From Laetmonice hystrix (Eukaryota), in contig OZ249449.1 of the NCBI GenBank assembly GCA_965235115.1, positions 9,362,001 through 9,426,000 of the forward strand: DNA of 64,000 bases, read 5' to 3'. Numbering within the stretch: position 1 is the stretch's first letter; each line of letters starts with the position of its first letter. This document shows, piece after piece, positions 14,901-20,900 of this stretch. The notes beneath the pieces were generated by a model. It did not search any database and was not told the origin of the DNA. It was given only the letters and a program-made list of their open reading frames with translations. The position numbers and the translations under genes are program-made.

Positions 14901-17900
14901 GACGATCCTTAATTCACCAACAAGTCTTAGAAACTGAAAGCGAATGACCTTGAGAAGTTCACCACTGACCTTGAATCCATGTGCACTGATAACCCTGATG
15001 TCTGCCGGAACTCTGTCGCCAAACTTCACCTCAATGATGTCGCCGACGACCAATTCCTCTGCGTGTACATTGATCTTCTCATTGTTACGTACCACAATGG
15101 CAAACTGCAGGAATCAAAAAAACACAACACTTAACACCTTTTAACAAAAGTACAGTGTTCAATGCTTGTTAATGTTGAAATGTGCTCTCTTTTTTTTCTT
15201 ACTTTACTTATTTTTAAGTAGATTTCACTGTTAACTATTAACATTTAAAATTGATACAACTCTTAAATATACAATTCTATTTATAATTTGTAGATCAACT
15301 GATCTAGTCATGAACTGTTTACCAGTAATATTCTTTACTTGTCTGTAGTTGAAATCAAAAACATAAATCTCAAAGCACAACAAGTTTTGAAACAACAACC
15401 ATATCTCTGCACTTCTTTTTACCAGTAAATATTATCTTAGGGCGAAAAAAAGGCAAAATCTGGCCTGTTGAAAGAAGATAACTCTGAATCAAATTGTGTG
15501 CAATGGTATGAAAATGTAGGGAGGAAAACCATTCAAATCATATTGCTTATAGCAGCATTCAAAAGTTATGTCTACAGAATGGTGCAACGGCTTATTATAG
15601 TGAAGTTAACATAACAGACACAGGAGCTACCACCGCGATATTTTTAGTATCAATGTCTGCTAAGACTTAAGGACTGTACCACATGCTCACAAGTGACGTC
15701 ACAGACACCAAGGAACTTGACACATTGTTTCTGTATGTTTGGGTCATGTTTAGTGTGTATCCTTGTGATGAGGTTAAGGGTCAAAAGTGAAACTACCCGA
15801 CATGTTGAGGATACTGTGCCAAGTCAAATACCCTATGGGCCATAGTACTAAATTTGTAAAGTCTGTTGTATAATTGCACAACTGTCGTAGTACATAATAA
15901 AATTCATAGATCAATTTTTCATAAAAGCAATAATAAAATCTTTCCATGGGTGGAAAGGTATTGCGCTACACGAAATGCGCAAAGCAGAGTGTTTAATCTA
16001 AACAGCAACAATTATTCTTAATCGGACTAAGATCTATCATACACAAATTAACAAATCTTAGATATGTCAAGAAGGTAAAATAATAAGAACATAAAAGTGC
16101 AGTAAACCACAAAGTTACCCTGTTGCATATACTGACTACAATCTCCTGCAAAGTCAACTTGAAACGCTACCACAACCTAACAAGCATTCTTCACGTGCCA
16201 GTTTTAAAATTCAACTCAGCTAATGCAGCTGCTTGAATAGAACCCGCTTCCATTCCAACTATTCAAGTCAGAACTTTTCCTAGTTTTAGCCAAGCGACAA
16301 ACAAATGTCAAGATGACTATCTCACCAGTAGGGAGGGGGGGGGAGATCTTTTGTTTATTTTGAAACATTTGTATTTTTCACAAGACATTTTTGCTACTTG
16401 GGTTCTCTGACTTAGAAACAGATACCGTAACAGGAGTCAAGATAAAGAAAGTAATTTTTCCGTGGAGTCTAAATATGATGACATATGGTATGTACAGGAT
16501 CCCACTGGGCAGTTGGACTTACAGGATGCAGCATGAAGCCTAAGACAAGCACAACAGGTTGAATACAACATTAATTGGCACTTAAAACTACTGTGTCCTG
16601 TGAGGAACAAAGCAATTCCTTTAAGATGTGTTTTTGTATTACTGGTGGTAAACTTCACTGGCAGCTTTAATCTATTATTACCAGTCCTTCTGCAGACAAC
16701 ATCCAGCGCTTCGATAAAACTAAATCATTAATTCAGTCCAGAACTTGCACACCCATCAAATCTTGTCAAAATCACATACTTTCTTCCTATATCTTATTTC
16801 AATAAGATACCGACTTAGCACGAAGTGGAACACAACTTGACAACTTTTACAACCTAAATTCCTTTTTTCTTCTTCTATGAATTAAAAAGTACTGACTGAG
16901 AATTTACAAACAAATGAAACAAAGGATTCTAGGTATAGGAAATCTACAGCTTTACTGTAAAACACAGCTAAGTCAAAGAGTAATAGAATAGGTAGGTGGG
17001 CCCTACTGGGAAAAGGAGATTAAGTCTGGAAACACAGATTCAGCTCATGCTGCATCCTGCACCAACAACAGCCAGTCATCATGCTTGTTGCCTTAGCAAC
17101 ACTTTCAGCACAAATTCATTAAATAAAAACAGAGAATATGCCACATAATGGTGGCATGAGGAGATGTGCACTTTGTGAAGGCACACAACTTCACCTTCTT
17201 CAATCTGCCCCTCTAAATGTTCCGACGGTCTGGTCCACGCTTTCATAATGTCATCATGTTAATTTTCATAATAACCTTTTCTCATTGAATTACAAGATTC
17301 TAACCGAAATTACATCTTTAGTCATGACCTTAAATATTTGCTGGCAGTCATGCGTGTGGACTTGAAGTGAGAGGCAAAGAGATGAAGAGGATGTAGTCAA
17401 CATGCCCTCCTCCTGCACAGCTGTAGTCAGTCCGGGCAGGTTTCACCAACCTGGGGCACCATGCTTTTGAAGGATTCCATAATGCGGGAGCTCTTTGCTT
17501 CTTGATAGTACGAGAAGCATCCAGTAACCACGACAACGCCAGTTAGTACAATGCCTAGGTAGAGCTGTTGGGTGTTGCATGCGCATAATACGCAAGGTAG
17601 AAATAAAGCAGAGATTTGTCAGTCTCCTCCATCACCCTTACTTATTGGGGATTTTTTTTGGTGCCGTGACCAGGACCACCAAATGTTAACATGGGACTCA
17701 TTCTTGAACATTATGTCATAAAGTCAGACGTTTGCCATACAATAACTCCACTGTCTGTCAGAAGGGGGCGCCTCAATCGTCCCTCATGTTGCATGTAGTT
17801 TGGCCTAGAACCTTCTCCTACTTGATTGGGTAATAATGGATTAGGAGTTAAGTTGTGTGTTGGGCCTCATGTGGTTGTGTTCTGTGGGAAGGGAGCCTTG

Positions 17901-20900
17901 AGACCACATGGGGCATGCACCCAAATGCAGCAAGGACAACAAACCTGGGGGACCAAGTTTTTAAACGACTCCATAATGGCGGAACTCTTGGCATCTTGGT
18001 AGTAGGAGAAACAACCGGTGATGACGACCACGCCAGTGAGAACAATGCCTAGATAGAGCTGTGGGAGGAGGGACGCGTACCACAAACACGAGGCATGGAA
18101 TCAGGATCGGGCATACAAGGGGGATAGAGGCAGAGGGTGGAGAGATAATACCAGACATCCATTAGTTTGGGTTATATGTTGCCACTCCCCTCACTCTCTG
18201 GGTTCTTATTTTCCCCCAGTCTCAAGAACTTCTTCGTCCTTTTCTGTTTGATCAATTTTGGGTTGAAGACTAACAAGGGTAACTGGATCAGCCGAGCAAT
18301 CAGCCTACTTTGGTCAAGGAGAACACTTACAGGTCTATTTTGCACACCACTGCGGCGATGACTGGTCACTTTCTTACCGGGATTAGTGAAAACAAGCGAT
18401 AGAGTAGAAGGTGAGCATTGGAAAACTGTGGCTAACACAGGCTAGGTCCTTACATCCACACCCTACGTTATCTAGGGTAGATAATACCAGTTGTTAGCAG
18501 GTCATGTTAGGGTTCCCGAAGCAGGAAGGTCACGTGCTCTTGGTATTGGCACCCTTACGACACACAGTAGCACCAGCCACCTTGTTAAACTAACTCCTGT
18601 TAGTTTCTAGCCCCGTCTGGCATCTTACCGCTGCATGCATTCATCACAGCGCCACCTAGAGGTAGCCCCTGACATCAAGGCCAGGACAATGTATGGGAGA
18701 CCAACCTGCGGTACCAAGTTTTTGAACGATTCCATAATTCGCGAACTCTTAGCCTCCTGATAGTAGGAGAAGCATCCGGTAACCACGACGACTGCAGTCA
18801 GTACAATTCCTAGGTAGAGCTGGATCATCCAGAAAAAGACACGGTCACACACACGTCACAACTACACATATCTGTGCTCCCTAGTGAGCAAGAACAGGCG
18901 TATCTCAGCACAGAGACTCCCAACTTTCCCTCCTTGGGTATTGCGCTGAAAAAGAAATTGGGCTACTCTACCTAGTTTATGGGTAAACTATTGCCATCGT
19001 TCACTCGGGGCACTAACACACATACCACTCTAATGATGTCAGGAACTGAAAGAAATTGTGAAAATAAAGCCACACAATTCACACGCACACACAAGGGTCT
19101 TGTTCCTAACCAGTCTCCAGACTGATCATAGCATACACAGCGACATGGTGGACTACCGGTATATGCCATAAAATGGCGTCTATTGTGATGCAAGCTGAAA
19201 TAAATTCAGTGCTGCCATCTACGGTGTCCTTTTTTGGGCTTGTGTTGTCGGGTTGCTCGCTCCAGGGACTCACGTCATGTGACCAGCCCGTCGACACAGC
19301 TCTATAAAACCAAGGCCTCCTGTATCTATTGGATAAAACAAAATCCAAAAATCTGTGCAGAATAACTAAACGAACAGCCCAAAAAGTAACATGTAAATTT
19401 AACTGCATCACACTCAAAAATTTCACCCTTTTTGACCTGAAAGGCACCTAGTTGTCTTTGATGTGAATCTCCTAAGCGCATTAAAAAGAAATAAATAATT
19501 TTTAAACTTTTTCAATCTGATTTTTCTGGTTTCAATCACGACAAAGCTCTTTCACGGGCCACAAAGGGGAAACTTCAGAGATCTCGATGACTGGGTTAGT
19601 AATCCACTTAGGGTCTGGTTGCCATGGCGACAGTTCACCAACCTGAGGCACCATGCTTTTAAAGGATTCCATGATCTTGGAGCTCTTTGCTTCTTGGAAG
19701 TATGAGAAGCATCCTGTTACTACGACGACACCAGTCAGCACGCAACCTAGATACAACTTTTCCGGGCAAAACAACCATTACAAGCCGTCATGGAAACGTC
19801 TCATTACATGTACACATATCAAGAAACCTGTTATTGTCAAATGGCATATGCATTTAACAATTTTACATCACAAAACATTGCAATCATATTACAGGCTGGT
19901 CTGGACACTGAAACATTACAGGGAAAAGGGCAAATCAAACTTTACCTCATATTTCTTCATGTCTTTATAATATTAACATTTATCTTGTACAAAGTAGAAA
20001 TCTTATTGTGTAAGAGGTCCTCACATTTGTTACATTTCACAAAATATTATCAATTTTCAGACTCATCCCCTGAAAAAGAATATATTATGGGCAACCGGAA
20101 AATATATCACATCAAAATGCAATATGAAATTAATGTCATTACTCGCTTCTGCTTCCATAGTTTTTAGTCTAAAATTGAGTAAAATTGTGACTTTTACTCA
20201 CAAAAGAACAGATTCCAAAATTACATTTACTCAGATATTATTTACCTTCTTTTATGCTATGAGTAAATCTTCCATCAATATCAAACAATTTGACTCGTGT
20301 CTCAAGAGATGAGAACTTACATTATCTCCTGGTGGATCCTCATAGGTCGACGATTGGATGGAATAGGCAACGAAGCAGAGAATGGCCCCTATCCATAGCA
20401 GCAGGGCAAAGCCACCGAACAGCTGTTTGCAAAACTTGACCCACTCTGGGGTTGTCTTGGGCGGAGTCAGTTCGTTAGGCCCGTCACGCTCCATGACTTC
20501 CCGTGCATGGTCCGTCGTCATTCCCTGAAAGACAAAAAATTTTCTACAATAACCAAACAGTAAAGCATTTCTTTTCCCTCAACTCTTAATTTAAATATCA
20601 CACGTCCGTGAATCCAATGAGGCAAGGAAAAAACTTTTAATTGTCCTTTTTTTATCTTTATTACTTTGTCAGATGTTTTGGTGAAATTGTGATAAAGCTG
20701 GATTCTACGAAACAATTTAAGAACAGCCTCTGTCAACATGATAAGTTGTAACCGTACTTACCACCTCGATGTTGGTTCCTAGTCGAGCAACGATCTCGTC
20801 CAACGGCACCTTGTGATCGTCCTGTGAAACAAAACAATGGAAAATGTTAATAACCACACCAACAATCTTACTAACCTCTCTGGTACAAAGTAACCAACAT

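Follow-up and report, generated by a model that had tools for sequence, protein, structure and literature searches.

The 64,000-nucleotide (nt) stretch of DNA analysed here, referred to throughout as the window, comes from the annelid Laetmonice hystrix (GenBank assembly GCA_965235115.1, contig OZ249449.1, forward-strand positions 9,362,001 to 9,426,000) and carries on its reverse strand a Na,K-ATPase alpha-subunit gene (the enzyme is hereafter called the pump). The coding sequence begins with a start codon at 21196 (MDEAGG…) and ends, after …ETYY and a stop, near 5955. Full-length similarity, the DKTGT phosphorylation motif and a C-terminal …WVEQETYY in the open reading frame (ORF) segments identify it as an alpha subunit; 17 collinear tblastn segments connect the locus to a relative of 1031 amino acids (aa), the best PDB matches are alpha1 and alpha3 chains, and the nearest named relative of the protein is that of Capitella. 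The exon model of the whole gene is only approximate outside the region described below, and the gene span alone was used from it.

Between two constitutive exons of this gene lie four exons, A to D, that encode alternative versions of the second membrane helix (M2) and of the M2/A-domain linker (Table 1). Each is 114 nt long, of phase 0-0 and stop-free, with AG before it and GT after it; neighbouring and homologous, alike in length and phase and each with splice sites of its own, the four make up an exon cluster. An initial annotation, made from the sequence alone, had proposed this arrangement, and its coordinates, exon length, phase, AG/GT sites and flanking exons all hold on re-reading. 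The 38 codons correspond to residues 123-160 of pig alpha1: in a phmmer search against solved structures the exon aligned end to end with that segment (7d91_A), and the cassette therefore begins directly after N122, as had been claimed. Read 5′ to 3′ along the gene, the introns across the cassette measure 564, 823, 647, 380 and 2346 nt. Only the exon itself, with 3 nt upstream and 6 nt downstream, constitutes the duplicated unit; the cassette introns cannot be aligned with one another. A sensitive tblastn search of window positions 13001-23000 returned no fifth M2 copy or remnant. Peptides B to D are 79-89% identical to that of exon A, and variation is confined to the eight of 38 positions already listed in the initial annotation, which read, in the order A/B/C/D, 127 C/I/I/I, 131 G/A/G/G, 135 V/V/I/V, 142 F/Y/Y/Y, 144 E/E/D/E, 149 K/R/A/R, 156 S/N/N/S and 157 M/L/L/M. 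In all likelihood the four exons are a four-way mutually exclusive cassette that arose by tandem exon duplication within a single Na,K-ATPase alpha gene, and from which each mature mRNA would take exactly one 38-codon exon.

Table 1. The pump gene, the M2 cassette and its flanking exons (coordinates are positions in the window).
Feature	Position	Strand	Details
Na,K-ATPase alpha-subunit gene	5955..21196	(-)	ORF segments; tblastn of full-length relative L013; own-genome searches
Constitutive exon, 204 nt, M1 + M1-M2 loop	20321..20524	(-)	ends …PPGDN (N122); donor gtaagt
M2 exon A	19643..19756	(-)	C127, G131, F142, K149, S156, M157; acceptor aaag, donor gttggt; RNA-supported
M2 exon B	18706..18819	(-)	I127, A131, R149, N156, L157; donor gttggt; in DNA contigs
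M2 exon C	17945..18058	(-)	I135, D144, A149 (uncharged variant); donor gtttgt; in DNA contigs
M2 exon D	17451..17564	(-)	nearest to consensus; donor gttggt; in DNA contigs
Constitutive exon, 135 nt, starts FAIVVRN	14970..15104	(-)	donor gtcagt

The only RNA-like run for this animal, X4, derives from the same sample as the DNA runs and was searched as assembled contigs (Logan, 58 Mb), in which rare variants are dropped; like every other run found, it is not recorded as RNA, and it was taken as such because one of its contigs is spliced. That contig (3767 nt, depth 669) joins window pieces 20525-20321, 19756-19643 and 15104-14967 directly, its junctions 20321→19756 and 19643→15104 matching the prediction to the base with B, C and D skipped. 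A retrocopy as its source was considered and ruled out: the genome contains no other M2 copy, so the spliced form must be RNA. In the X4 sample, then, A is the exon included in the dominant transcript, which passes over the other three. This lone transcript contig, using A alone, agrees with the mutually exclusive splicing proposed in the initial annotation; of the predicted junctions, the path 20321→A→15104 was recovered exactly and with one copy, and those of B to D were not seen in X4 contigs. A separate X4 contig of 156 nt (depth 3.8, 3 mismatches) maps to window 15715-15867, in the long intron between D and the next exon; pre-mRNA, a repeat or a short transcript missing from the annotation might each account for it.

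When the genome assembly (627 Mb, 35 contigs) was searched in six frames, these four were the only M2-like exons found. Another pump-specific exon likewise retrieved this gene alone, the next-best genome match being 35% identical. The animal has one Na,K-ATPase alpha gene, and splicing, rather than paralogy, is therefore the sole source of M2 diversity; the earlier suggestion that isoforms are made by splicing instead of by paralogs was to this extent borne out, the specificity of the isoforms aside.

It might be asked whether the four copies are themselves an artefact of assembly, generated from collapsed or expanded haplotypes, as what connects exon A with the other copies is the assembly and the RNA contig: DNA-run contigs do not cover 19550-20600, a hole that we do not interpret, given that a record filter removes some entries. 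No observation favours such an origin, which is extremely improbable. The copies differ from one another at 18-31 of 114 bases and are set in unrelated introns, the same layout occurs in independent genomes, and contigs from each of three DNA runs span 17289-19450, so that B, C and D lie on one contig in every run (the three runs represent one sample, possibly the assembly's own, and their support is not independent of the assembly). Intronic structural differences between the assembly and contigs from that sample occur at 16699-16751, 18303 and 18994: at the first, 1 nt stands in place of about 51 nt, and the others are an insertion of 25 nt and a deletion of 8 nt. All presumably represent the other haplotype.

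Divergence among the copies is old and mostly silent. By the Nei-Gojobori method, nonsynonymous divergence (dN) between copies is 0.035-0.13, synonymous divergence (dS) comes to 1.0-2.0 where saturation still allows an estimate, and the ratios (omega) are 0.03-0.055; 15-22 of the differences in each pair are at third codon positions. A recount of A versus D returned the 14 synonymous and 3 nonsynonymous codons on which the initial annotation had called the copies old and selected, a view that these rates strengthen. All four copies are under strong, long-lasting purifying selection; had one of them gone unused through the greater part of the divergence time, such constraint would not be expected in it. 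Haplotype differences within the species follow the same pattern: over 17289-19450 the run contigs differ from the window by 25 single-nucleotide polymorphisms and 4 indels, all intronic, and the absence of any of these 29 differences from the 342 exonic bases of B to D would arise by chance with a probability of ~0.007 if they were evenly spread. Selection, the preserved splice sites and exons B to D being free of haplotype differences together form the main argument from which we infer that these three exons serve in cell types, life stages or conditions of the animal other than those sampled. One could propose instead that only exon A is used in the species and that the other three are leftovers of an ancestral cassette that splicing now ignores, as would fit a lone transcript contig containing A only and the lack of X4 contigs on the other three. 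Contigs, however, can show presence but not absence; the frames and AG/GT sites of B to D are intact and retain the same conserved donor hexamer, omega is low at saturated dS, the 29 haplotype differences all fall in the surrounding introns, and related arrays of 4-6 copies have been kept in other phyla, where several copies are annotated as used. We therefore consider relics unlikely.

The cassette is not unique to this genome but is shared by annelids, nemerteans, brachiopods and non-holometabolous arthropods. Matches to a four-exon profile among 1.8 billion representative proteins were mostly single-exon ORFs from genomic contigs, with two clear cases (P0002 and P0149) of a protein that contains two distinct M2 copies and a read-through intron. 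A metagenome scan yielded 80 loci, and 7 metagenome contigs (6 from the scan plus L005) bear tandem AG/GT-flanked copies, 2-3 each. In Capitella teleta four intact copies, along with a short remnant, are enclosed by the same pair of constitutive exons; the locus of Lineus longissimus has six M2 copies, and that of Lingula anatina three intact copies and one divergent one. Two of the six Lineus exons (L087 18118-18439) are just 94 nt apart, the only spot in the examined arrays where steric exclusion between neighbours might apply. A synteny check with the TPR gene that neighbours the Lineus and Lingula pumps gave no match. Counting copies in other lophotrochozoans, as the initial annotation had suggested, thus uncovered arrays of 3-6; the exon tree suggested with it (38 columns, 48 rows) has no branch at 95% support, and it shows neither that copies are one-to-one orthologues nor that the arrays of spiralians and arthropods arose once.

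Sets of public isoforms that match in length and vary nowhere but in the M2 exon are present in Lineus (X1/X2/X3), Tubulanus (X1/X2), Lingula (X1/X2), Owenia (two products) and the thrips Frankliniella occidentalis (X5/X6), as well as in a marine transcript pair (P0165/P0170). Gene predictions from two crustaceans (an isopod and a lobster) and from several insects (a dragonfly, a mayfly, stick insects and a thrips) include two adjacent M2 copies, the first reading …KSSAIM… and the second usually …KSSK/RIM…; the thrips departs from this, its second copy being of another type, …KSGSIM…. At the locus of Aplysia and of Crassostrea there is a single M2 exon, with the consensus donor gtaagt. Of the 31 insect isoforms examined, 25 belong to Holometabola; these include eight sequences of seven Drosophila species along with isoforms of mosquitoes, moths, beetles and bees, and without exception they have the same b-type M2. 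In vertebrates, for which proteins were read, the sample shows one M2 type. A second M2-like stretch in two vertebrate proteins, ~400 residues away or an identical repeat, was set aside as an apparent prediction or assembly artefact. Priapulus caudatus proved uninformative as a cassette comparison, its pump gene (P0270, L091) being intronless over the whole coding region; this gene may be retrogene-derived. The cassette is thus already implicit in RefSeq isoforms elsewhere, in records that are automatic annotations. The initial annotation knew of no described M2 cluster, a statement that stands for papers, none describing the cassette having been found in the open-access literature, and fails for databases, where isoforms produced by the same cassette are on record for nemerteans, for a brachiopod, for a second annelid and for a thrips.

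Which residues the copies exchange can be read from 17 arrays. Within arrays, differences fall mainly at 127, 131 (130), 134, 138, 142, 145, 149 (148), 152 and 156-158, and positions 124, 125, 128, 129, 132, 133, 136, 137, 139, 141, 147, 151, 154 and 159 never differ. The helical moment at 100 degrees is 59.5, compared with 21.9 in permuted columns (p ~0.001, a value that is indicative only, the 17 arrays not being phylogenetically independent); for the window's array alone p = 0.035. This 3-4 residue spacing of variable sites points to the exchange of one helical face, and the copies thus appear to swap one face of a long helix and to leave its packing faces untouched. In the window the stripe consists of 127, 131, 135, 142, 144, 149 and 156/157, and the residues on most of the helix are identical. 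The commonest switch, between a basic and a small residue at 149, is found both here (exon C, where the charge of K/R149 is lost) and in arthropods. The stripe may face lipid, neighbouring helices or the A domain; a link between it and the phospholipid site near M2 is conceivable, but nothing that we retrieved provides support for one.

One copy per mRNA is found in the X4 contig, in all 31 full-length mRNA-like contigs of other animals from the metagenome scan, each of which contains exactly one M2, and in the equal-length isoforms annotated elsewhere. Mutual exclusivity is therefore well supported for this kind of locus; in this animal it was verified for A and would extend to B, C and D. 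A competing description would treat the copies as ordinary cassette exons, with transcripts of zero, two or more copies being common and meaningful. An exon of 114 nt preserves the frame at any inclusion number, the introns are long enough for copy-to-copy splicing, and several automatic arthropod predictions include two adjacent copies. The two-copy proteins, however, stem from ab initio predictions, the transcript here and the 31 contigs have exactly one copy, and the RefSeq isoforms are equal in length. Furthermore, given the topology of P-type ATPases, zero or two M2 helices would invert everything downstream. We accordingly judge ordinary cassette exons to be very unlikely.

Several observations nevertheless weigh against a mutually exclusive cassette as we have described it, in addition to the exon tree's lack of branches at 95% support and the non-independence of the arrays. 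RNA support in this animal covers exon A only (one sample, X4); X4 has no contig on B, C or D, which, with rare variants dropped, does not amount to evidence of absence. No known mechanism of exclusivity fits, among docking/selector pairing, steric hindrance and frame-shift with decay: the inner introns, at 380-823 nt, are too long for steric exclusion, and the frame is kept with zero or two copies, so nonsense-mediated decay cannot police splicing. Docking/selector complementarity was no better than in shuffles (ungapped, G-U pairs allowed; first and last introns against the three inner ones), and comparison with ~85 fetched loci revealed no intron conservation. The functional difference between isoforms, whether in pump kinetics or in the way the exposed face of M2 interacts with lipids or partners, is one that we purely infer. 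Inverted repeats were also inspected, and all look like chance matches.

The donor sites suggest how a mutually exclusive choice might be enforced. Exons A, B and D share CAG/gttggt (exon/intron) and C has gtttgt; both hexamers are also found in the array of Capitella and in three of the metagenome ones. By contrast, the donors of constitutive neighbours and of the single-copy M2 exons of molluscs read gtaagt or gtgagt, and array exons mostly have non-consensus donors. Our best guess is that regulated competition among sub-optimal exons with conserved donors (CAG/gttggt, gtttgt) would enforce the choice, and that any mis-spliced product, lacking M2 or having it twice, would have an inverted topology and be lost.

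Comparison with known systems places the cassette among several routes to pump diversity. The annotated isoforms of spiralians and a thrips (Lineus, Tubulanus, Lingula, Owenia and Frankliniella) involve the same gene and a 38-residue exon of the same phase and length, and the genomic arrays of those species sit between the same two constitutive exons; 2-3 copies are annotated in these relatives and 3-6 are present in their DNA, compared with four here, and copy order and identity cannot be matched between species and the window's array. In arthropods (Ladona, Ephemera, Timema, Frankliniella, Armadillidium and Homarus) tandem M2 exons occur at the same place and pair an Ala149 copy with a Lys/Arg copy, much as exon C contrasts with A, B and D, but there are two copies rather than four and they are seen mostly as predictions wrongly including both. 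Drosophila Atpalpha is listed, in the supplement to PMC9741552, among genes with tandem-duplicated exon substitution. The insect and mite Atpalpha cluster at M6-M7 resembles the present one in that tandem exons of the same length give equal-length isoforms, but in Osmia, Cotesia, Microplitis, Bacillus and Varroa what distinguishes the isoforms lies at ~834-866 and not in M2. The window has a single copy of that exon: of all segments of the relative, M2 (its residues 136-175) alone matches there more than once. Judging from these relatives, the Drosophila cluster is probably the M6-M7 one. The insect cluster mentioned in the initial annotation fits the isoform differences at ~834-866 in Hymenoptera, a stick insect and Varroa, together with the single M2 type of the sampled Drosophila isoforms. 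Vertebrates obtained tissue-specific pump isoforms, alpha1-alpha4, by whole-gene duplication, which affects the whole protein. The vertebrate M2 exon has the same boundaries as the exon in the window; in humans it measures 114 nt.

Other features of the window lie outside the cassette. A 27-nt minisatellite at 21662-21901 (8.9 copies, 98% matches), ~470 nt upstream of the pump start codon, has several open frames, on either strand, and probably does not encode protein. Some 2.8 kb past the 3′ end of the pump coding sequence, on the opposite strand, an uninterrupted ORF of 610 aa (1362-3194, +) encodes many C2H2 zinc fingers (zf-H2C2_2, E 7e-64) and holds a 147-nt tandem duplication at 1400-1695. 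Far from the pump, two 34-nt C/A-rich tandem repeat arrays (47282-47732 and 48467-48689) lie ~1 kb apart.

M2 and its linker follow the A domain through the E1/E2 cycle and adjoin the cardiotonic-steroid site. The principle of the cassette is not new: channels, and the fly pump too, offer well-known cases of membrane helices encoded by mutually exclusive exons. The cassette probably gives one gene several pump isoforms. Nerve, muscle, gill and excretory tissue each call for a suitable pump even where there is just one alpha gene, and splicing of this kind is a possible route to such pumps. It is conceivable, though we hold this only tentatively and think it rather doubtful, that the cassette is an ancient isoform generator, perhaps ancestral to protostomes, that swaps the M2 face and the charge at 149 to tune a single-gene pump; it would then have been kept in annelids, nemerteans, brachiopods, crustaceans and early-branching insects. 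If so, it would tune the E1/E2 balance, or the sensitivity to lipids or partners, as a splicing counterpart of vertebrate alpha1-alpha4. The patchy distribution of the cassette raises the question of how single-M2 lineages replaced this diversity. The cassette may also be regarded as a natural, selection-filtered mutagenesis of the M2 face and the M2/A-domain linker, in which each variant has long been kept.

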